This document shows, one piece after another, positions 4,095-64,000 of a stretch of DNA of 64,000 nt. A model generated the notes under the pieces. The model did not search any database, was not told where the DNA came from, and saw nothing but the letters and a program-made list of their open reading frames with translations. This DNA is from Macrostomum lignano (lineage: Eukaryota), in NCBI GenBank assembly GCA_002269645.1, contig NIVC01002838.1, positions 72,315-136,314 on the forward strand, in the 5' to 3' direction. Every line of letters begins with the position of its first letter. Positions within the stretch are counted from its first letter, which is position 1. A program made the position numbers and the translations under genes.

Positions 4095-5320
4095 ACTATG
4101 TCTACCTCTCTATCTACCTGTCTTTCTACCTCTTTATCTACCTGTCTGTCTACCTCTCTATCTACCTGTCTTTCGACCTCTCTATCAACCTGTCTGTCTA
4201 CCTATCTATCTACCTGTCTGTCTACCTCTCTATCTACCTGTCTGTCTACCTCTCTATCTACCTGTCTGTCTACCTCTCTATCTACCTGTCTGTCTACCTC
4301 TCTATCTACCTGTCTGTCTACCTCTCTATCTACCTGTCTGTCTACCTATCTATCTACCTGTCTGTCTACCTATCTATCTACCTGTCTGTCTACCTCTCTA
4401 TCTACCTGTCCGTCTACCTCTCTATCTACCTGTCTGTCTACCTATCTATCTACCTGTCTGTCTACCTCTCTATCTACCTGTCTGTCTACCTCTCTATCTA
4501 CCTGTCTGTCAACCTCTCTATCTACCTGTCTGTCTACCTCTCTATCTACCTGTCTGTCTACCTCTCTATCTACCTGTCTGTCTACCTCTCTATCTACCTG
4601 TCTGTCTACCTCTCTATCTACCTGTCTGTCTACCTCTCTATCTACCTGTCTGTCTACCTCTCTATCTACCTGTCTGTCTACCTCTTTATCTACCTGTCTG
4701 TCTACCTCTCTATCTACCTGTCTGTCTACCTATCTATCTACCTGTCTGTTTAATTTTCTATCCACCTGTCTGTCTACCTCTCTATCTACCTGTCTGTCTA
4801 CCTCTCTATCTACCTGTCTGTCTACCTCTCTATCTACCTGTCTGTCTACCTCTCTATCTACCTGTCTGTCTACCTATCTATCTACCTGTCTGTCTACCTC
4901 TTTATCTACCTGTCTGTCTACCTCTTTATCTACCTGTCTGTCTACCTCTCTATCTACCTGTCTGTTTAATTTTCTATCCACCTGTCTGTCTACCTCTCTA
5001 TCAACCTGCCTGTCTACCTATCTATCTACCTGTCTGTCTACCTCTCTATCTACCTGTCTGTCTACCTCTCTATCTACCTGTCTGTCTACCTCTCTATCTA
5101 CCTGCCTTCTACCTCTCTATCTACCTGTCTGTCTACCTCTCTATCTACCTGTCTGTCTACCTCTCTATCTACCTGTCTGTCTACTTCTCTATCTACCTGT
5201 CTTTCGACCTCTCTATCTACCTGTCTTTCGACCTCTCCATCTATCCATCTCTATCTATCTATCTACCCGTCTGTCTATCTCTCTATCTACCAATTTTTGA
5301 CTGCTCTATCTACCTAACTG
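4095..5320. repeat. 24-bp minisatellite (TCTACCTGTCTGTCTACCTCTCTA)
   Basis: Tandem units visible directly; source of the STCL/LPV artefact ORFs. Confidence 0.95.
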
Positions 5321-5954: not shown

Positions 5955-7270
5955 TGAGTATCAGGTGAGGATTAGGGTGAGGATTAAGTGAAGATTAGGT
6001 GAGGATTAAGGTGATGATTAGGTGAGGATTAGAGTGAGGATTAAGTGAAGATTAGGTGAGGATTAAAGTGAGAATTAGGTGAGGATTAGAGTGAGGATTA
6101 GGTAAAGATTAGTTGAGGATTAAAGTGAGAATTAGGTGAGGATTAAGTGAGGATTAGGTGAGGATTAAGGTGAGGATTAGGGTGAGGATTAAGTGAGGAT
6201 TAGGTGAGGATTAAGGTGAGGATTAGGGTGAGGATTAAGTGAAGATTAGGTGAGGATTAAGGTGATGATTAGGTGAGGATTAGAGTGAGGATTAGGTAAA
6301 GATTAGGTGAGGATTAAAGTGAGGATTAGGTGAGGATTAAGTGAGGATTAGGTGAGGATTAAGGTGAGGATTAGGGTAAGGATTAATTGAGGATTAGGTG
6401 AGGATTAGGTGAGGATTAAGGTGAGGATTAGGTGAGGATTAGGTGAGGATTAGGTGAGGATTAAGATGAGGATTAGGTGAGGATTAGAGTGAGGATTATG
6501 TAAAGATTAGGTGAGGATTAGGTGAGGATTAGGTAAGGATTAAGTGAGGATTAGGTAAAGATTAGGTGAGGATTAGGTGAGGATTAGGTGAGGATTAGAG
6601 TGAGGATTAGGTAAAGATTAGGTGAGGATTAAGGTGAGGATTAGGTGAGGATTAGGTGAGGATTAGGTGAGGATTAAGGTGAGGATTAGGTGAGGATTAG
6701 GTGAGGATTAGAGTGAGGATTATGTAAAGATTAGGTGAGGATTAGGTGAGGATTAGGTAAGGATTAAGTGAGGATTAGGTAAAGATTAGGTGAGGATTAG
6801 GTGAGGATTAGGTGAGGATTAGAGTGAGGATTAGGTAAAGATTAGGTGAGGATTAAGGTGAGGATTAGGTGAGGATTAGGTGAGGATTAGGTGAGGATTA
6901 AGGTGAGGATTAGGTGAGGATTAGGTGAGGATTAATGTGAGGATTAGGGTAAGGATTAGGTGAGGATTAAGATGAGGATTAGGTGAGGATTAGAGTGAGG
7001 ATTAGGTAAAGATTAGGTGAGGATTAGGTGAGGATTAGGTGAGGATTAGAGTGAGGATTAGGTAAAGATTAGGTGAGGATTAGGTGAGGATTAGGTGAGG
7101 ATTAAGATGAGGATTAGGTGAGGATTAGAGTGAGGATTAGGTAAAGATTAGGTGAGGATTAGGGTGAGGATTAGGGTGTGGATTAGGGTGAGGATTAGGG
7201 TGAGGATTAGAGAGGGGATTAGGTGAGGATTAGGGTGAAGATTAGAGAGGGGATTAGGTGAAAACTAGGT
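5955..7270. repeat. 11-12-bp telomere-like minisatellite (GGTGAGGATTA)
   Basis: Tandem GGTGAGGATTA(G/A) units containing TTAGG and occasional TTAGGG. Confidence 0.95.
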
Positions 7271-7531
7271 GAGCTTTAAATTGCTGATTGATTTTTAATG
7301 CTGCCACTCGCACAATCAGCTCAGGACTTGAGTAAAGCTAAAAGCTTAGAGATAGTTCTCCCTCTTTATTAACAGTTTCAAAAGTTTTGTCTGTGGCACT
7401 AATTGAACCCTAATGCGGTTAAAAAGCTGCTGCATAATTTGAGAGGAATGTTAGTTGCTCTGTCAGTCAACAGTTGCTAACCGCTGTCTCAATTGCTTGT
7501 AGGAATCTCAGGTCATCTCGAAGCGACACTA

Positions 7532-10500
7532 ATGGCGTCCTCTCATGTAAGCCGGTAGTTCTTTAGTATTAAAACTGTTATAGTTTCATTCTCATGCTAT
7601 GACGATTCCCTCATAACCCCGTATCCTCTGCAGCCGAAATCCCTAATGACGGTGCAAGTTGGTCAAGCTGGGATACAAATTGGACATGCGGTGTGGGAGC
7701 TGTTCTGTCTGGAGCACAACATATCGGCAGATGGCACCCCGAAACTGCACTGTGGCGATCTCGGCAATGTGGAATCAGTGTTTGTGCCCACACCGAAGGG
7801 GCGCTACTTTCCCAGGAGCCTGTTTGTGGACACAGACCCCGCTTGCGTTGGTGAGAGGAGATGGGGTCTCAGGGTGAGAGTAGATAGGGTCTGAGGGTGA
7901 TGATAGTAGATAGGGTCTGAGGGTGAGAGTAGATAGGGTCTGAGGGTGAGAGTAGATAGGGTCTGAGGGTGAGAGTAGATAGGGTCTGAGGGTGAGAGTA
8001 GATAGGGTCTGAGGGTGAGAGTAGATAGGGTCTGAGCGTGAGAGTAGATAGGGTCTGAGGGTGAGAGTAGATAAGGTCTGAGGGTGAGAGTAGATAGGGT
8101 CTGAGGGTGAGAGTAGATAGGGTCTGAGGGTGAGAGTAGATAAGGTCTGAGCGTGAGAGTAGATAGGTCTGAGGGTGAGAGTAGATACTAGATAGGGTCT
8201 GAGGGTGAGAGTAGATAGGGTCTGAGCGTGAGAGTAGATAGGGTCTGAGGGTGAGAGTAGATAAGGTCTGAGGGTGAGAGTAGATAGGGTCTGAGGGTGA
8301 GAGTAGATAGGGTCTGAGGGTGAGAGTAGATAAGGTCTGAGCGTGAGAGTAGATAGGTCTGAGGGTGAGAGTAGATACTAGATAGGGTCTGAGGGTGAGT
8401 AGATAGGGTCTGAGGGTGAGAGTAGATAGGGTCTGAGGATGAGAGTAGATAGGGTCTGAGGGTGAGAGTACAATGGTTGAGTCCCTGGTAAGAGAAATAG
8501 GCTAAACGGTTCTCCGTAAATCATGAAGCAGGTAAATCCCAGCCAGGAAGTTCATAGCAAACTTTAATCGCAAAAAGTTCACCCGCCCTGAAACCGCCAC
8601 CAGACGAGATGCGCTCAGGACCCTACAAGCAGCTGTTCAGCTCCCGGCAGCTGCTCTCAGACCAGGTGGACGCGGCCAGCAACTACACAACTGGTCGCTA
8701 TGGTTACGCCAAGCGGCTGGTGCCGGACACGCTCGAACGACTGCGCTGGATGACTGAGAAGGCGGACTCGAAGCCGACGCTCTGTCTGGTGCACAGCGCC
8801 TGCGGCGGCACCGGCAGCGGCTTCGCCGTGGCCTGCCTCGCCAGGATGGCCGACGAACTGGGCATCGAGCCGCAGAACATCATCGATCTGTGCGTTGTGC
8901 CCGGCGTCTCCGCTGGCCAGAGCTCCTGCGAGCTGCTCAACACCGCCCTGTACCTGGACGAGTCGCAGGATCTGACCAGGCAGACCGTCTGCGTCTCCAA
9001 CTCGGCGATGTTCCGCCTGTGCAACTCGCAGCTGCAGTCGCAGGGGGCGGCCACCTTCGCACACGCCAACCGCGCCCTGGCAGCCGCCTTCAGCAACCTC
9101 ACCGCCACGGAGCGCCTGCCCGGCTCCAGCGTCGGCCTGTCCGGCATCCTGGACAGCCTGCTGCCGTTCCGTCACCTGCGCTACACCCTGCTAGCCTGCG
9201 CTCCTTTCCTCACCGCCGAGAGCGCTAGGACGGAGCGTCCAACCGCCAAGTCCGCCACCGCGGCCGTGTTGGAGCTGTCCAGCCAGTTCCTCGACGTTGA
9301 CCTCCGTCAGGGTCGCCACGCTGCCGGCTTCCTGTTGTACCGCGGCGACGCCAGTCTGGGCGAGGCGCAGAAGCTGGCGGCGGAGCTGACTTCCCGAGGC
9401 CGAGTGCAGTTCCAGGACTGGGCGCCTACCGGCTTCCGCACCGGCGTTGTGACGCCTCCGCCAGTTGCTCCGCCTGGCAGCGGCTTCGCAGACGTCCCGA
9501 TTTCCGCGACGCTGCTTGCCAGCCACTCTGGCATCTCCGACATCTTCGCCAAGCTGGCCGCGAGTTCTAGGAAGCTGCAAGACCGCGACATGTTCGTGCA
9601 CAACTACGAGGGCGCGATTGTGTCTCTGCTGAACAAAACGGTGGAGGGGAGCAACGCGGGGATGAATTTAGGGGCAGGCGGACCGGGGACCAACACGGAC
9701 TCGGACTCGCAGAAACCGACCAGCCTGGACTCGGCTTCGGCCGATAACAACAGCGTGCGAATGTGGATGAACCCGCCGGCGGCTCAGGCTGCGCTGGCTT
9801 CGGGCGGTGGTCGTGGTGAGCTGCAGAACTACCGGCGCAGGCGACTGACGTCCAGAGAGCCCGGAAGCCACGCCACCCAGAAGCCGCAGCAGCAGCAGCA
9901 AGAACAGCAGCAAGACGAGGAGGAGCCTCAGGTGTCGCGTACCTGCGCACTAAGCGACGTCTTCGGCGTTCGAGTCCGCCTATCATCGGCCATCGACTAC
10001 CTGCAGCGTGTGTCGATCAGCTACGCCGCCGACAGTCAAACCGACGCAGGTGACGCCGCCGATGTCGATGCTGCCGCAGTTGGCGACGACAATGACGTCA
10101 TCGAGGCGACTAACGGCGAGGAGGACGGCAAGGAGGACGAGGAGGAGACGGAGGGCGCCGACGAGAAGGATGGAGAGGAGGGCGAGCAGCGAGTGGATAA
10201 CAAGCTGCACGTGACCATCAATGATGTCGGCGGGATCGGCAGAGATCTGGAAAATGTCGACTCCAATCGGTAAGAGGTCGTGGGCACCCCATGGCGCAAT
10301 GCCTTTCGGCGAAATCGGTCCCGCAACCACCTCTGAGGCCAGATGCATTTACATGTAGCTTCTTACTCTGATACAAAAACACAGGTCCGTTAGCGGCCAG
10401 TCTGCCCAGTCTGACTCAAAGCAACAACAGCAACAAGCGGACGGGAACTCAGTCAGCGCAGAAGAGGAGCCGCAGGTTGAACCATCTCAGCAAAGCGAGC

Positions 10501-57479: not shown

Positions 57480-57555
57480 TCACACCCGTATCTAACTGGT
57501 CTCACACCCAAATCTAACAGGTCTCACACCCGTATCTAACAGGTCTCACACCCGC
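57480..57555. repeat. 3 x 22-bp repeat (TCTAACAGGTCTCACACCCGTA)
   Basis: Three imperfect copies. Confidence 0.75.
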
Positions 57556-58170
57556 TGGAATTAAGGCTTCTGGAATCGTGTCTGCTGGAGTCGTGTCTGC
57601 TGGAATCGGGGCTGCTGGAATCGGGGCTGCTGGAATCAAGTCTGCTGGAATCGGGGCTGCTGGAATCAAGGCTGCTGGAATCCTCGAGGCTGCTGGAATC
57701 GAGGCTGCTGGAATCGGGGCTGCTGGAATCGAGGCTGCTGGAATCGGAGCTGCTGGAATCGAGCCTGCTGGAATCGGGGCTGCTGGAATCCTCGAGGCTT
57801 CGGGAATCAAGGCTGCTGGAATCGTTTCTGCTGGAATCAAGGCTGCTGGAATCCTCGAGGCTGCTGGAATCGAGGCTGCTGGAATCGGGGCTGCTGGAAT
57901 CGAGGCTGCTGGAATCGGAGCTGCTGGAATCGAGGCTGCTGGAATCGGGGCTGCTGGAATCCTCGAGGCTTCGGGAATCAAGGCTGCTGGAATCGTGTCT
58001 GCTGAAATCAAGTCTGCTGGAATCGTTTCTGCTGGAATCAAGGCTGCTGGAATCGTGTCTGCTGGAACCAAGGCTGCTGGAATCGTGTCTGCTGGAATCA
58101 AGGCTGCTGGAATCGTGTCTGCTGGAATCGAGGCTTCTGGAATCGGGGCTGATAGAAACGAGGCTTATGG
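57556..58170. repeat. 15/18-bp minisatellite (GCTGCTGGAATCGAG)
   Basis: Tandem units; open reading frames on both strands. Confidence 0.92.
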
Positions 58171-59249
58171 AATCTGATTGTTACTTGGTTTTGTCTAGCT
58201 GTTTATATACTAAAAGTTTGTACATGCATGCTGGATGCTTTTCATGTCGTATTATGAGCATCCAGCCACGGCTCAGGTAGTTACCGAATACCACCTTTAT
58301 ACTGGTGGTGCTGTCAATATACTCGTACAATAAAGTATTTTGCGGTTTAACGTACTTTCGTCTCCGTGAGACTGGTAAATGCATTTTTGACAGAGTAAAT
58401 TTATGTTGTACAATTAAATCGGGTTATTTACATGCCTAGGTGAGTCACTACATCCTGCTGGGGGGAGGGGGTGGATGGTCAAGGAGACGCAACATGCAGT
58501 ACTTCAATGAGTCCTTCTCTCCTGCTTTCTGTGTGACCTCTGATGCCAAAAGTATGACTATCTCTCTGAAGAAGCGCTATAATTGCTTGACCTCAGTCAG
58601 AGACCTTGAGTCAGAGAGGGAACAGTGAGACACAGAGAGACATCGAATGACAGAAAGAGAAAGAAAAACAGGGAGAAGGCGGAAAAAAAAACATACGGGC
58701 ACACACCCACACACATACAAGTTCCCTTGGGGCGTTGAATGCCCTCAACGGCTATTGGAAGGTTAAAAGAAAATAGCTATCAACAATGCCTTCTGAGAGA
58801 TCTGCAAGGACAGATTAGAATGCTTCCGCTGTGGAGAAAATGACTCGAGCCACAAGAGCCTCGTTTCCTTTCTCTCTTTCCTCCCTATGTTCTTTCTTTT
58901 TGGAGCTACAGGGTTGCCCTTAATCTATTGATTTTTCATTACTTATCCATGTGCCAACCCCCTCACAGAAAAGCTGTTTACGAACTCTGGAAACCACCTG
59001 GCTTCTCCGCCCGCGTGGGTGGCGAGCTTGTGTCCACCGGAGGGGCATAAAGCACCCGCGGGAAATGGAGGCCGGCAACTTTCTTCTGAAGCATTTCTGC
59101 CGATCCGCGGGATCCGGACTAAACTCAAACTGATCCAGAAGCCCTCTCGTCAAACAACTTTATTCGGCTTCTTTGCTGCATGCTCGAATTACGTGAAGGC
59201 TCGTGTAGAAAATTGCATCGCCACTTTTTCCCACTTATCTCTCCTAAAT

Positions 59250-59395
59250 CTCACTCTCTCTCCCACTCATCTCTCGGCCTAAATCTCACTTTCTCTCTCA
59301 CTCATCTCTCGGCCTAAATCTCACTTTCTCTCTCACTCATCTCTCGGCCTAAATCTCACTTTCTCTCTCACTCATCTATCGGCCTAAATCTCACT
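59250..59395. repeat. ~4 x 35-bp repeat (CTCTCTCACTCATCTCTCGGCCTAAATCTCACTTT)
   Basis: Directly visible. Confidence 0.85.
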
Positions 59396-59420
59396 GTGGG
59401 AGCCCCCACATGAAAAAAAA

Positions 59421-61368
59421 ACATTTACCATAGACAAAAACCGTTTCAACAGAATTCACGAGGATTTTTACCACAGACGAAAGCAATCCTGCACGCCGAA
59501 TAAAATAAGAATAAGAATGGCTGGAGTTAGTTACGTAGTGATAAGAGTGTTTGTTATTTAGAAAATTGAAATCAACCATGGCCACTCTGAGTGACAAAAA
59601 TTTGGTTGGTCCATTGATAGACCTGCGCTACGTGTCTGTGTGTGGAGTTAGTAAAGAGGAGATGGTTCTAGCTGGTACGACTAGCAAGCTAGAGACAGAT
59701 GCCGACAAACTGACAGCTTTGGTAGCAGATGTCAACTTCGATGATGAGCTGGCCAAGCTGATATCTGCGGATCCCGAATCGCTGGCTACGCTCGACGAAC
59801 TGGATCATCTCGTGAACCAATTGGAACGAGACAATGAGTGCCGAATAAGTGTTTCCAAGCAGAAGGCTATTATCAAGCGTCTTACCGACTGGCTTGAGAG
59901 CTGCAATGTGCATCTTGACTTCAAGAACGTCTCTGTTGAAGAACTCGCACGCTGGATTCGATACTTCTATGCTTCGAAGCGTAAACCCGATGGAGTATTT
60001 TATTCTCCTAACACCATTGTCGGGTTGCGCGCTGCTTTGTATCGCTACTTTATGAAGTTGCGCGGACTAAATATTATTGCCGAGCCAGCCTTTCACGCTG
60101 CAAACTTGATGGTAAAGCATGTGTGTAATGCGTACCTAAAATCAGGAGGACGAATTCGACACTACGATGCGATTGAATCCGAAGATCTGATGAAGTTGGC
60201 CAGCTATTTTGACCGAAGCACACCAGCCCGTCTGCAGGAGGAGGTGTATTTCAATATTATATTCTATTACGGCAATCGTGGCCGTGAATGGTTGCGTGGC
60301 CTGACTGCGAATTCGTTCAGCAAGACGGTCCTTGCCAACGGCATGACGGCGATCAAGCTACAAAGCAGCACTTCCAAGAATGTGAAGGGATCAGTGGATA
60401 TTCGCGACTGTGATGACAACAAGGAGGCTCTTATGGTTGCTAAGCCAGGATCAAAATGCTGCCCTGTTGCGGCCTTCAAAATGTATCTATCGAAAATTGT
60501 TGCAGTTCCCGACTGGAACGGCACCGATTTTTTTGTTCGGCCGAACCAACAGGTTGGACCAAACGGAATCTGGTACACCAAGCAAGCTGTTGGTATCAAC
60601 ACATTAGGGCCGCTGATGAAGACAATATCTGCAAAGGCAAATCTTTCGAAGCCGTACACAGGTCACTGTGTAAGAGCGACCGTTGTTACGGAACTTCACG
60701 AGGCTGGATACGCCGTAGAAACCATCGCTAAAGTGACGGGTAACAAGGTAAGCTGAAAACCGTTACAATGTGTGTACAAAACGTAGCAAAGCTTGCACAT
60801 TGTATCTGATAGAATTATTCTTACGTTTATGCGAAAATTTCAGTCCAGTACATCCGTCGAACGGTATATTCGACGTGGAAAGCGAAGAGACACTATAATG
60901 ACGGGCATGAGTGAACAATTGAGTATTGCTCTTGACGGAACTGGCTCTTCGGAGCGGCATTCGGAGTGCGGCGCAGTCTAAAGTGCTGTTAACAAGTGAG
61001 CCGACTACGTCGGCGTCAACAAAGAAGATGAGGATCATCGCTGATGGGGATTCCAACGTGGTGCAGTTCGTTTTCGAGTAGATAAGGATCGAAATTGATC
61101 TACGAGCTATTGTTCTTGGAAAGGAAACTATGTCTGTTTGAGTGTTCCATTGCTTTAATACGTTAATGTTGTTACTCATTTTTGTCAATATTTCTCATTT
61201 TGTGTCACTTGTTTGTTCTTATTGAAATACAATTCAGTCTATTACCGTACAGGAATGAAAATGCATTCCTGCACTGTAAGCATTAACATTTTAAATGAAG
61301 ATTTACCATGGACGAAAGCATTTCCGCACGCATAAATGCATTCCTGCACGTAGAATCAAACAAGAATA
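59421..61368 (+). mobile_element. Putative Crypton-like element bounded by imperfect direct repeats
   Basis: Left 59463-59512 TTACCACAGACGAAAGCA-ATCCTGCACGCCGAATAAAATAAGAAT versus right 61300-61367 TTACCATGGACGAAAGCA-[20 nt]-TTCCTGCACGTAGAATCAAACAAGAAT; true termini not proven. Confidence 0.55.
59578..60981 (+). CDS. Crypton/DUF3504-type tyrosine recombinase, 435 aa, one 96-bp intron
   Basis: Exon 1 59578-60747, intron 60748-60843 (AAG|GTAAGC...TTTCAG), exon 2 60844-60981. Motifs YSPNTI, YGNRGRE, CPV, YTGHCVRAT, VTGNK|SSTSVERY. Confidence 0.88.
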
Positions 61369-62180
61369 CGGGCTATTCGCCGCATTTCTTATTACTTGGC
61401 AGAGAGGCAGTTTTGCCCATAGACAGCGAACTTAGAGAGCCAAATCGATATGCTAATTATCCGACTTATGTTGCCGAGCATGCAGAGAGATTAGAGAGTG
61501 CTAGAAAATTAGTAAAAGAAAAATTTGAGAAAGTGCATGACAAGAGACAGATAGACGCCGAGAATCAGAGAAAACCAAATGTTATTGAAGTAGGAAGTTT
61601 AGTGCTAATTAATAATCCACAGCTTAACATTGATGAGTCTAATAAGTTTCATAGGAAGAAGAGAGCAGCTTTTAGAGTGCTTAAGCAAATTTCAGAAGTA
61701 GTTTTTTAAGATTCAGAAAGAAGATGGCAAATTAGTAGGTAATAAGTTATTAGTGCATAGGGATAACATGGCGCCCGTGCCAAATTCAGTGAAAGAGCCA
61801 ATAGATAAGGGAAGCCAGGAGAGCGCTGAGATAGTAGAAGTTACAAATAAGGGAGGCCAGAAGAAAGCTAAGCATTTAAATAGAAAAAAATCAGCAAGAG
61901 GTAGGACAATCAAGAAAGGAAAGCCATACCAGAAAAAATAGATTAGAGAAGCCAATTATCGAATTAGAATCTGAAGAAGAAAGCTCGGATGAAGAATACC
62001 CGAATTGGTTCTGCAAAATTCGTGAAAATGAACAATCGGTACATGAGAATGAATCAGAGCTAGAAGCCGAGACAGAAGCTGAGATAGAAAATAATATGCA
62101 ACATGAGAGCCTAGCGGAAGAAGAGATGGAGAGGTCAGAGAGAGAGAGAGGGAGGAGAAGTGGCACCGGCATACACCACT
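61368..62180 (+). mobile_element. Decayed Ty3/Gypsy pol 3' end (integrase C-terminus plus acidic tail)
   Basis: TGYSPHFLLLGREAVLPID...ERLESARKLVKE...EVGSLVLI...F.VLKQIS; stops and frameshifts downstream. Confidence 0.8.
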
Positions 62181-62641: not shown

Positions 62642-64000
62642 GTGAGAGAGAGATACCCTGTGCTGGGCCTAAGTGTGTACTGCCCGATGACTCATCGCCT
62701 GAGCAGGCGTGTGGCAGCCACACTCAATGTCTTCCCACTCGCGCTGCGAGGCGTACCCGTACGATACAGTAGAGGATTTAATTTTAGGGATGACTCAGGA
62801 GATGAGGAAGAAGATCCATTTGCAGGACTCAACAACCTCGGACGCGACACCAACCCGGACATGATCCGCATGATGCTGCAGGCCATGCAACGTCAGCTTG
62901 ATCTACAGCCTAAGAAGCAGGTCAAGATGAAGAGCTATACGCCATCGCAGGACATCCGCGTTTGGTTAAAGGCTTTCGACCTACGATGCGAAGCAGAAGA
63001 TCTACAGGATGAAAACGATAAGAAGGCCCAATTGCTGGCGAATTTAGACTTAAATTCAGCCTACGCCGCGGTACTTCGCATGAGGCTGCCCGACCGCATC
63101 AGCTATCAACAGCTTCAGCAACGACTAATAGAGAGATTTTCACGACTCTCTGGACCAGACGAATATCGAGAAGAACTCAGAGGCCGCAGCCAGCGCAAGA
63201 ACGAATCAACGGAAGATTACGCAGATGCTCTGCAGGAGCTAGGAGAGCAAGCCTTCCCTTGGCTTGAGCCTCGCCATCTAGAGCAAGAACTGATTGACCA
63301 GTTCCTGCGCGGGATTCGCACGTCATCAGACTGCCGCGAGAAACTTTTCTGGATCCGACCTACGACACTAGCAAAGCCTTGCGAGCACTGAAAAGGATGG
63401 AACTAGTCAAAGACCTGGCTCATCGTTCGAAAGAGCCCCCGGTCAGAATGTTGGACGGGGAGGGACAAGCCTCAAAGGAGCCCAACAACAGCGCCCTTTC
63501 GAAGTTGGAAAAAGTCGTTGAGCAGCAGCAGCATCTACTTAACACGTTGGCATAGCAGGCCACAGCCAATCAAGTGATCGGTCAAGCGAACCGACCGCCG
63601 CACTACACGTGCTATGAGTGTCATCAAGAAGGACACAAGGCGAGAGATTGTCCGTATAGACGCCAATCAACTCAGCAGTTTACGGGAAACGCCGGCCGGA
63701 GGACGTAAACGGCAACGCCCCCCGAGCTCCAGCCCAGGCTATGCAGCCGACACCGAACACGCCCGGAAGAGTATGGCCCCGCAGCCGCGGCAGCTGACTC
63801 GTTCGAGTCGTCAGTAAACGAGGAAACGTTGGATGGAGGTTTCGTGGACGCCTCCTTTGTAAATACTGTCCATGCGCGTGACGCCGATCCATTTATTACA
63901 GGACGAGTGGCTCGACGAGAGGTCGCCTTTCTGCTAGACAGCGGAAGCAGAAGAAACTTCCTCGGAGCGTCCACTTGGGCCGCTATCAGGCGTCGTTTAC
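62642..64000 (+). mobile_element. Decayed Ty3/Gypsy gag (CCHC knuckle) and aspartic protease, running off the window end
   Basis: Retrotransposon-gag-like RSQRKNESTEDYADALQEL...DQFLRGI; frameshift near 63375; TAG at ~63553; CYECHQEGHKARDC at 63610-63651; FLLDSGSRRNF at ~63928-63960. Confidence 0.85.

Follow-up and report, generated by a model that had tools for sequence, protein, structure and literature searches.

A decayed Crypton of the flatworm Macrostomum lignano with a palindromic motif in its 3' subterminal region

Results

The stretch of Macrostomum lignano DNA analysed here (contig NIVC01002838.1 of assembly GCA_002269645.1, positions 72,315 to 136,314) comprises 64,000 nucleotides (nt) and is referred to as the window. 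Between positions 59400 and 61370, it contains a unit of about 2 kilobases (kb) with a recombinase gene as the only long open reading frame (ORF) and without a reverse transcriptase. The ORF at 59551-60756 runs over an intron (GTAAGC...TTTCAG, 60748-60843) into 60844-60981. The resulting gene model on the plus strand consists of exon 1 from the ATG to the GT donor (59578-60747), the intron, which occupies the same position as in the related M. lignano locus L001, and exon 2 with the catalytic tyrosine in an ERY motif (60844-60981). Splicing restores the sequence ...VTGNK/SSTSVERYIRRG, which aligns with the homologues, and yields a product of 435 amino acids (aa). This product matches the Pfam family DUF3504 (2.6e-07, 31.3 bits vs. 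a cutoff of 29.7), a match assigned to exon 1, and Phage_integrase over residues 346-401 (1.7e-05), where 25.1 bits are slightly below the gathering score of 27.1; the latter match was assigned to exon 2. The closest relatives are the M. lignano proteins P0001 (an intact protein of 506 aa; 68% identity) and P0002 (55%), followed by unnamed proteins encoded on metagenome or read-archive contigs of about 2 kb (about 35% identity). A profile of the homologues compared with solved structures matched the HxxR...GH...Y region of Tn1549 Int and XerA as well as human QRICH1, the top match by sequence being Tn1549 Int (6emz, E = 2e-4).

Residues R236, H363, R366 and Y398 of the product are invariant in the homologue alignment, and their assignment as catalytic residues is backed by the alignment with Tn1549 Int. 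The name CryptonA was given by Kojima and Jurka to DUF3504 proteins with catalytic residues and without reverse transcriptase (PMC3212892). Because the same combination is found here, the gene is predicted to code for a metazoan recombinase of a known transposon class, namely a Crypton-type tyrosine recombinase of the DUF3504/CryptonA type. The second catalytic histidine, present as GHK in all eight homologues, is replaced in the window copy, which reads GNK (Asn389). The conserved C-terminal tail KKMRIIADGDSNVVQFVFE, followed by a stop codon, is encoded at 61020-61081 (+) within the ORF 60926-61081; P0001 and P0002 end with homologous sequences, and the tail aligns with the DNA of L001, but is out of frame with exon 2, which ends with an in-frame TAA at 60979-60981 before the tail is reached. 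A second intron was considered as an explanation and rejected, since no donor and acceptor pair of the right phase was found by eye before the stop at 60979; the different frames of tail and exon 2 rather point to a frameshift in the window copy. Judged from these features, the window copy is a decayed Crypton with an unrecognisable 5' end, a His-to-Asn exchange at a catalytic position and a tail out of frame, and its recombinase is probably impaired.

The conserved tail is followed, 161 nt further on, by a palindrome at 61242-61279 (not assigned to a strand) of the structure TTACCGTACAGGAATG-AAAATG-CATTCCTGCACTGTAA, in which inverted arms of 16 nt (14/16 complementary) surround a spacer of 6 nt. 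These values are exactly those of the initial annotation, which had also placed the palindrome downstream of a metazoan tyrosine-recombinase gene, as borne out by the gene analysis above, and had recognised in its arms the motif of the flanking direct repeats. The latter also proved correct: ATTCCTGCACG occurs four times in the window with at most one mismatch, at 59485 (+), 61246 (-), 61265 (+) and 61340 (+), and all four copies lie inside the element. Shuffled sequences gave an expectation of 0.57 copies, and none out of 100 shuffles reached four. The 38-mer of the palindrome is found once in the 64-kb window. When the entire window was scanned for inverted repeats with arms of 16 nt, 14 or more pairs and 4-10 nt between the arms, this site alone was returned; about 0.1 such sites would be expected per 64 kb from a binomial estimate. 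The palindrome is thus unusual, yet its rarity by itself is not overwhelming. Folding as single-stranded DNA gave -8.5 kcal/mol (z = -4.0 vs. shuffles). When parsed by motif instead of by pairing, the site reads CGTACAGGAAT-GAAAATGC-ATTCCTGCACT, i.e., 11+8+11 nt, which is the arm and spacer arrangement of loxP and FRT sites, and contains an inverted copy at 61245-61256 (CCGTACAGGAAT) and a direct copy at 61264-61275 (CATTCCTGCACT) of the repeated motif, here called motif A ((C)ATTCCTGCACG, 11-12 nt).

No other copy of the window's own family was found in the window, and this family was seen only once. The ends of the element were compared with two related families from the same assembly. Family 1 consists of P0001 and the members of its 90% cluster (L001, L004/L005, L006, L013 and L014; six loci representing five independent insertions), and family 2 is the cluster of P0002 (L002, L007 and L008; three independent insertions). 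Copies of the same family share about 98-100% identity across a length of about 2.0 kb, with a sharp stop of the identity at both sides. The limits of family 1 run from TAATATTCCTGCACGAAAACGAG to ...CATTCCTGCACGCTGTGGTCAAACGACAATG between five different pairs of flanks, its copies being about 99% identical up to ...GGTCAAACGACAATG and from TAATATTCCTGCACG; those of family 2 run from TTAGGATTCTTGAACGCTAACGAG to ...CAATCCTGCACGCAGAATCAAATAAGAATG between three different pairs of flanks, with junctions up to ...AATCAAATAAGAATG and from TTAGGATTCTTGAACG. The six bases preceding the 5' end are ACAATG, ACATTG, GCACTG, TGAATG and GGATTG in family 1, whose 3' end is ACAATG, and AGATTG, GCAATG and AGAATG in family 2, whose 3' end is AGAATG. 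All eight left flanks end with A-N-T-G (N being mostly A or T and C once), and over the eight insertions, 30 of these 48 positions match the 3' terminal hexamer of the respective element. Such a short terminal sequence matching the target is the pattern of Cryptons. The 3' tips read ...(G)ACAATG in family 1, ...AAGAATG in family 2 and ...AAAC-AAGAATA in the window.

An empty site was available for L001, whose flanks (4640-4782 and 6859-6920) are duplicated in inverted orientation and without the element at 7270-7520, 400 nt away. This paralogous empty site (...TTAAAAACAGACAATGGAAAC...) contains GACAATG (7/7). The left junction of the filled site is 4 nt shorter than predicted from the empty one, for which a later indel may account. 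Thus, the junctions with the chromosome are located at the tips of the element in eight related insertions and one empty site. At two loci, bases of the left junction recur in the right flank, namely AAATTGAATG after 10 nt in L013 (around 2326 and 4358) and GATTG after 7 nt in L014 (around 2340 and 4359); these recurrences could be local target repeats or an offset duplication.

Direct copies of motif A are present near both ends of the window element as well as of both M. lignano families, and they are often preceded by a second motif, B (ACCATAGAC). The recognisable leader of the window element starts at 59393-59426 (+) with GTGGGAGCCCCCACAT..., of which GCCCCCACAT is common to the leader of family 2, and positions 59424-59559 are collinear with positions 70-214 of the family-1 leader, the collinearity beginning only at position 70. 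The motif of the first leader copy of B (ACCATAGAC, 59427-59435, +) is shared with L001 and L002, which have it in both the leader and the 3' region. A repeat unit follows at 59470-59495 (+), consisting of the B variant ACCACAGAC, 5 nt and the A motif CAATCCTGCACG; it is homologous to L001 4901-4926 and L002 4969-4994 and represents a direct repeat (83% over 30 nt) of the 3' repeat unit at 61305-61330 (+), which is composed of the B variant ACCATGGAC, 5 nt and the A variant CATTTCCGCACG. The latter (61319-61330) is a fifth, weaker copy of motif A. Next to the leader unit, the segment CCGAATAAAATAAGAATA (59496-59513, +) resembles the 3' terminus of the element, as seen from the comparison of 59480-59513 with 61335-61368 (82% over 34 nt) and of 59482-59512 with the final 31 nt of family 2 (93.5%). 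An alternative assignment of 59467-59513 as the 3' end of a second Crypton located upstream was rejected because of the collinearity with the family-1 leader.

At the 3' side, the last A motif (CATTCCTGCACG, 61339-61350, +) is exact and matches family 1 at 12/12 and family 2 at 11/12 positions. It is followed by the terminus TAGAATCAAACAAGAATA (61351-61368, +), which is identical at 15 of 18 positions to the family-2 terminus CAGAATCAAATAAGAATG, whose end is set by three different flanks. By homology, 61351-61368 is thus the predicted crossover end of the window element, and the palindrome lies 89 nt inside this inferred 3' end. Homology to a retrotransposon integrase in the flanking DNA starts already at about 61356-61361, so the boundary with the target is blurred over 61356-61368; an overlap of the two homologies over about these positions would be expected if the crossover took place in a target similar to the end of the element. 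The possibility that 61308-61368 belongs to the retrotransposon, suggested by an integrase-like frame (MDESISARINAF...), was rejected because this DNA shows clear homology to the 3' ends of both families, and is also disfavoured by most integrase alignments beginning only at query residue 19-20. At the other end, the 5' terminal A motif and the conserved hairpin of the relatives are missing from the window copy: the hairpin had no match in the window at up to three or up to five mismatches, and BLAST of the relatives' 5' ends against the window gave no match. A candidate 5' end at 59172-59233 was rejected, its alignment score of 29 being not significant against a null of 22 +/- 4 (maximum 34).

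The palindrome has a counterpart at the homologous place in all six family-1 loci, ATCGTGCAGGAATGA-AG-TCATTCCTGCACGAT with perfect 15-nt arms, or CGTGCAGGAAT-GAAGTC-ATTCCTGCACG (11+6+11) when parsed by motif. It forms a DNA hairpin of -16 kcal/mol (z = -9.8), and every copy has it intact, with 101 nt between its end and the 3' tip. Since it is both intact and internal, it is not the place where the family-1 copies were opened to join the chromosome. Family 2 possesses the right arm only (...AAAAATAAAGTG-CAATCCTGCACG-TAAG) and forms no hairpin, and the distant relatives L003 and L009-L012, which repeat motifs of their own at both ends, have no equivalent small palindrome. The spacer between the 11-nt motifs, GAAAATGC in the window (8 nt) and GAAGTC in family 1 (6 nt), is conserved neither in length nor in sequence. 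The conservation of arms and spacer length in related elements, which the initial annotation had named as a check, did not hold: the arms are kept in family 1 only, family 2 has retained one of them, L003 and L009-L012 have none, and the spacer differs between the window and family 1.

Every family-1 element contains six exact copies of motif A, one located 4 nt from the 5' tip, one in the leader after motif B (ACCATAGAC) and 5 nt, two in the palindrome, one after the second B and one 19 nt before the 3' tip. The start-to-start distances of the three direct 3' copies are 55 and 20 nt in the window, 54 and 30 nt in family 1, and 55 and 31 nt in family 2. Direct copies away from the exchange point with a 54-55-nt spacing kept in three lineages are as expected for arm-type sites. 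From a three-way alignment of the 3' non-coding regions, we determined the identity between the window and family 1 for each motif: it amounts to 10/13 for the left and 11/12 for the right arm of the palindrome, 8/9 for B, 10/12 for the second and 12/12 for the last A, compared to 80/222 (36%) for the remaining columns. This difference argues for selection on the motifs, including the inverted arm.

We also scanned public metagenomes for the exact pattern GTGCAGGAAT-N2-12-ATTCCTGCAC. The 101 loci obtained were discarded because none encodes a relative of the recombinase by tblastn; they represent unrelated hairpins and are uninformative on the conservation of the spacer. Some metagenome contigs, including L021 and L049, carry 5-6 copies within one mismatch of ATTCCTGCACG and a hairpin of ATTCCTGCACG, again without a recombinase relative, and may belong to repeat families of other organisms.

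When the two ends of family 1 are joined, they read ...CATTCCTGCACG-CTGTGGTCAAAC-GACAATG-TAAT-ATTCCTGCACG..., and those of family 2 are laid out alike, the two A motifs being separated by 23 nt as well. At the 5' end of L001, there is a further inverted repeat with 37-nt arms (4787-4823 vs. 4852-4888, 84% complementary) around the centre CACGAGTGCGCGAAGCGCACGAG, and directly after it, 19 nt of the 3' terminus are repeated in inverted orientation (4889-4907 vs. 6840-6858, 89%). Positions 4877-4907 of L001 represent the reverse complement of the joined 5' start and 3' end; correspondingly, L002 4892-4908 is the exact reverse complement of its last 17 nt. Together, the 5' palindrome and the adjoining inverted 3' terminus imply that in a circle the junction would become part of a palindrome with arms of about 56 nt, forming one of these arms; a full-length element thus holds the mirror image of its own joined ends. 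This internal complementary segment is present in L001 and L002 and was not found in the window copy. L003, with 35% protein identity, has the same kind of 5' palindrome with nearly the same centre.

The centre of this 5' palindrome, CGAGTGCGCG(A/T)AGCGCACGAG, has a hairpin of its own (GTGCGC-N3-GCGCAC; L001 4824-4851, L002 4826-4852, L003 239-265) and is almost unchanged, although the recombinases are only 35% identical; it is not present in the window. The leader of L004/L005 (2497-2894) is extended to 399 nt vs. 113 nt and contains a near-perfect long 5' palindrome with seven extra A-type motifs in both orientations, including CGTGCAGGAAAAT-CATTGAT-ATATTCCTGCACG, where 13-nt inverted arms enclose a 7-nt spacer holding the reverse of the crossover motif. 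L009-L012, which are metagenome or read-archive contigs of about 2 kb, likewise carry a palindrome at the 5' end, and inverted repeats link the 3' end with the leader in L009 (1860-1925) and at the ends of L010-L012 (in L010, CGTGGATTAATGATATAA vs. TTATATCATGAATCCACG). Three contigs of a distant-relative element diverge immediately after ...GATATAA.

The flank of the Crypton (61369-61709, +) codes for the C-terminal part of the integrase of a decayed long terminal repeat (LTR) retrotransposon Pol and lies outside the element. Searching the ORF starting at 61302 with HMMER against 1.8 billion proteins gave 393 matches, the best being 53% identical to a Pol of 1358 aa, and most integrase alignments begin at query residue 19-20, corresponding to 61356-61361. 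The retrotransposon is decayed, as its frame is stopped at 61707 and continues elsewhere, with LLVHRDNMAPVP encoded in another frame at 61753-61941. A gag ORF at 62642-63391 (Pfam Retrotrans_gag) and an ORF with a CCHC zinc knuckle follow, so that the retrotransposon remains extend over 61356-61950 and 62642-63708. The order of a pol end, about 700 nt and then gag suggests two tandem elements or a shared LTR. An uninterrupted copy of the flanking retrotransposon, i.e., an empty site, was detected neither by a word-indexed protein search nor by tblastn and blastn against the fetched loci and the window, and the exhaustive HMMER search named the flank as integrase but yielded no DNA of an empty site. 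The window copy is thus a damaged relic lodged in a dead retrotransposon.

On the other side, the truncated Crypton leader is directly abutted by a tandem repeat of 35 base pairs (bp) (CCTAAATCTCACTTTCTCTCTCACTCATCTCTCGG, 59243-59395; 4.4 copies, 97% matches). An array with 73% identity occurs on the minus strand of L002 (2784-2910), 1.9 kb upstream of an M. lignano Crypton, and the repeat might represent a dispersed satellite or belong to a different repeat family. Further upstream, the window contains a 22-bp repeat (57480-57554), about 41 copies of a 15-bp tandem repeat (GCTGGAATCGAGGCT, 57554-58174) with repetitive ORFs of 195-199 aa on both strands (IPAA... and AGI...), and a long ORF at 8609-10270 with the GTPase and C-terminal domains of tubulin (Pfam 7.5e-13 and 1e-15). 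Several further long ORFs of the window are of low complexity or repetitive and have no family match.

Discussion

The initial annotation had regarded the palindrome as a loxP/FRT-like site and as the cognate crossover site of the recombinase. The likeness stands insofar as inverted arms made of the element's own motif are arranged in a geometry typical of tyrosine recombinases and kept in family 1; a conserved spacer, as would belong to such a site, was not observed. The role as crossover site is contradicted by the eight related insertions and the empty site, which place the junctions at the tips. On balance, we lean towards the palindrome being a recombinase-binding site within the 3' subterminal array of motifs, the exchange itself taking place at the tip. 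According to this proposal, the recombinase would bind motif A, and the palindrome would consist of the first A motif of the 3' array and one added inverted copy. The inverted pair would offer two facing docking sites for two-fold binding of the recombinase and may serve as an accessory or architectural site which helps to load or hold the enzyme at the 3' end. Strand exchange would occur elsewhere, between the 3' tip (...AAAC-GACAATG, ...AAAT-AAGAATG, or ...AAAC-AAGAATA in the window) and a target of the type A-W-T-G. This follows the model of Goodwin, in which a short sequence at one Crypton terminus matches the target (PMC13465315) and which likens Cryptons to prokaryotic tyrosine-recombinase transposons.

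Several observations weigh against a binding function of the palindrome. Motif A might have a role for a host factor or in transcription instead. Family 2, with three near-identical copies and intact ORFs, seems to be just as recent and yet has no inverted arm, indicating that transposition in this clade can do without the inverted pair. Moreover, the window family is represented by a single copy, and each arm of its palindrome deviates by one change from the motif consensus, which fits decay as well as function. Finally, the junction evidence is derived from relatives at 55-68% protein identity rather than from the window's family itself.

In a weakened form of the proposal in the initial annotation, the palindrome would be a true loxP/FRT-like exchange core which is not used for integration, but for resolving circle multimers or recombining copies, and we regard this as unlikely. 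The geometry does fit, with 11-nt inverted arms and a spacer of 8 nt (window) or 6 nt (family 1), and no other tightly spaced inverted A pair exists in standard family-1 copies. In addition, the joined ends of both families have a similar layout (..AATG, 4 or 5 nt, ATTCCTGCACG) and represent a weaker version of the palindrome (6-7/12 matches at the left and 9-11/11 at the right side), and the window spacer contains AATG, the microhomology of the crossover. On the other hand, all six family-1 loci carry the palindrome intact and at an internal position, without any junction or truncation point within it, it is absent from family 2, L003 and L009-L012, and its spacer differs in length (8 vs. 6 nt) and sequence between the window family and family 1. 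The perfect 15-nt arms of family 1 leave only 2 nt unpaired, suggesting that the symmetry of a hairpin or of dimer binding was selected and not a defined overlap region.

The inverted arm might also be a neutral accident, stemming from a local inverted duplication of the A motif in the ancestor of the window family and family 1, which we consider rather improbable. The dispensability of the arm in family 2 and the two mismatches in the window arms would agree with such an origin, and the family-1 copies are too similar (about 99%) for their identity to reveal any constraint. It is harder to reconcile with the left arm matching at 10/13 positions between lineages whose other 3' non-coding columns are only 36% identical, and with the two arms staying close together in both of them. 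An action on the transcript without involvement of recombination, either as a 3'-end hairpin at or after the poly(A) site or as a block of read-through into the terminal repeats, agrees with the strong stability of the hairpin and with an AATAAA directly upstream in families 1 and 2 (...CTAAAAATAAATTGTTAAATCGTGCAGG and ...CTAAAAATAAAGTGCAATCC), but appears very improbable given that at least five further copies of the arm motif lie in other parts of the element, some of them upstream of the gene and at the very 5' tip, that family 2 has the AATAAA without the hairpin, and that the window copy lacks a canonical AATAAA in the 40 nt before the palindrome.

Apart from the proposed role of the palindrome as a binding site with exchange at the tip, we entertain a broader and quite doubtful scheme, in which the clade would use modular sites, namely a palindromic core, two-motif arrays at both ends and a 5' palindrome containing the inverted joined ends, and the 3' palindrome would function as a second working recombination site. 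If this were true, an intact M. lignano recombinase and a site of 32-38 bp would form a compact, animal-derived pair of the Cre/lox type, and the modular architecture would link Cryptons to the origin of DIRS-type elements. The window locus itself, proposed in the initial annotation as the source of a recombination tool, would not supply one, because its recombinase copy is damaged. The near-identical intact copies of M. lignano, together with the candidate sites (joined-ends core, motifs A and B, palindrome), make the mechanism directly testable, and should the recombinase act on a defined short sequence, it would represent a small site-specific recombinase from an animal.

Compared with known systems, the palindrome resembles loxP, FRT and rox in its two inverted arms of 11-13 bp around an asymmetric spacer of 6-8 bp. 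The full FRT site has a third arm in direct repeat, which is resembled by the A motifs downstream of the palindrome. The spacer range of tyrosine recombinases is cited as 6-8 nt, and both the 8 nt of the window and the 6 nt of family 1 are within it. In contrast to loxP, FRT and rox, where the site is the exchange point, the flatworm exchange for integration is about 90 nt away, the spacer differs in length from one sister family to the other, and the inverted arm is lacking in a family that looks active. Tn916, Tn1549 and attP sites of the lambda type form a circle junction with imperfect arms, tolerate crossover mismatches and have direct "arm" sites away from the core. The flatworm elements would resemble them in these features, and Tn1549 Int is the best match among solved structures; they differ in that the gene is eukaryotic, contains an intron and is not accompanied by an excisionase gene, and a separate arm-binding domain is only putative.

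The full-length relatives also resemble the DIRS1, Ngaro and PAT elements, since they hold a segment complementary to the joined termini, as described for the internal complementary region of DIRS elements (PMC13465315), and share the B-N5-A unit between leader and 3' region. Unlike those elements, they have no reverse transcriptase, and the mirrored segment is located within a large DNA palindrome and lacking in the window copy. The active Chlamydomonas element CryptonF-1_cRei, which according to the available part of PMC9977147 ends with CACCG and targets CAYCG, is similar in that its end motif matches the target, as do the flatworm ends ...CAATG and ...GAATG with flanks of A-W/C-T-G in 8/8 cases. 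It belongs to Crypton group F, and its movement was observed, whereas for the flatworm elements a recent age is deduced only from the near-identity of their copies; an internal palindrome is not mentioned in that part of the article, from which Chlamydomonas appears as the only case of observed Crypton movement.

The closest correspondence is with CryptonA elements (Goodwin, Butler and Poulter 2003; Kojima and Jurka 2011, PMC3212892; PMC13465315), which likewise are units of about 2 kb with a tyrosine recombinase only, of the DUF3504/QRICH1-like and Phage_integrase type, have neither terminal inverted repeats nor LTRs, and carry a short end sequence similar to the target, a repeat of which is found at the other junction. 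For animal Cryptons, Kojima and Jurka found no terminal repeats, and the site requirements are described as unknown or absent, as far as the accessible sections of PMC3212892 report; for fungal DUF3504 elements, the repeats are variable or poorly conserved (the 2026 Glomhopper paper, PMC13465315). Relative to the animal Cryptons as covered by those sections of PMC3212892, the window element and its M. lignano relatives differ by the subterminal two-motif arrays, by an internal palindrome in one lineage and, in the full-length relatives, by a large 5' palindrome with inverted joined ends. A literature search for Macrostomum together with Crypton returned one paper containing both words, a review on genome architecture and speciation with a single mention of Crypton. 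The element extends the CryptonA group by a new member. New details are the arrays of motifs, the palindrome and the mirrored junction, which fit the known logic of tyrosine recombinases, with a core and accessory sites, rather than defining a new system.

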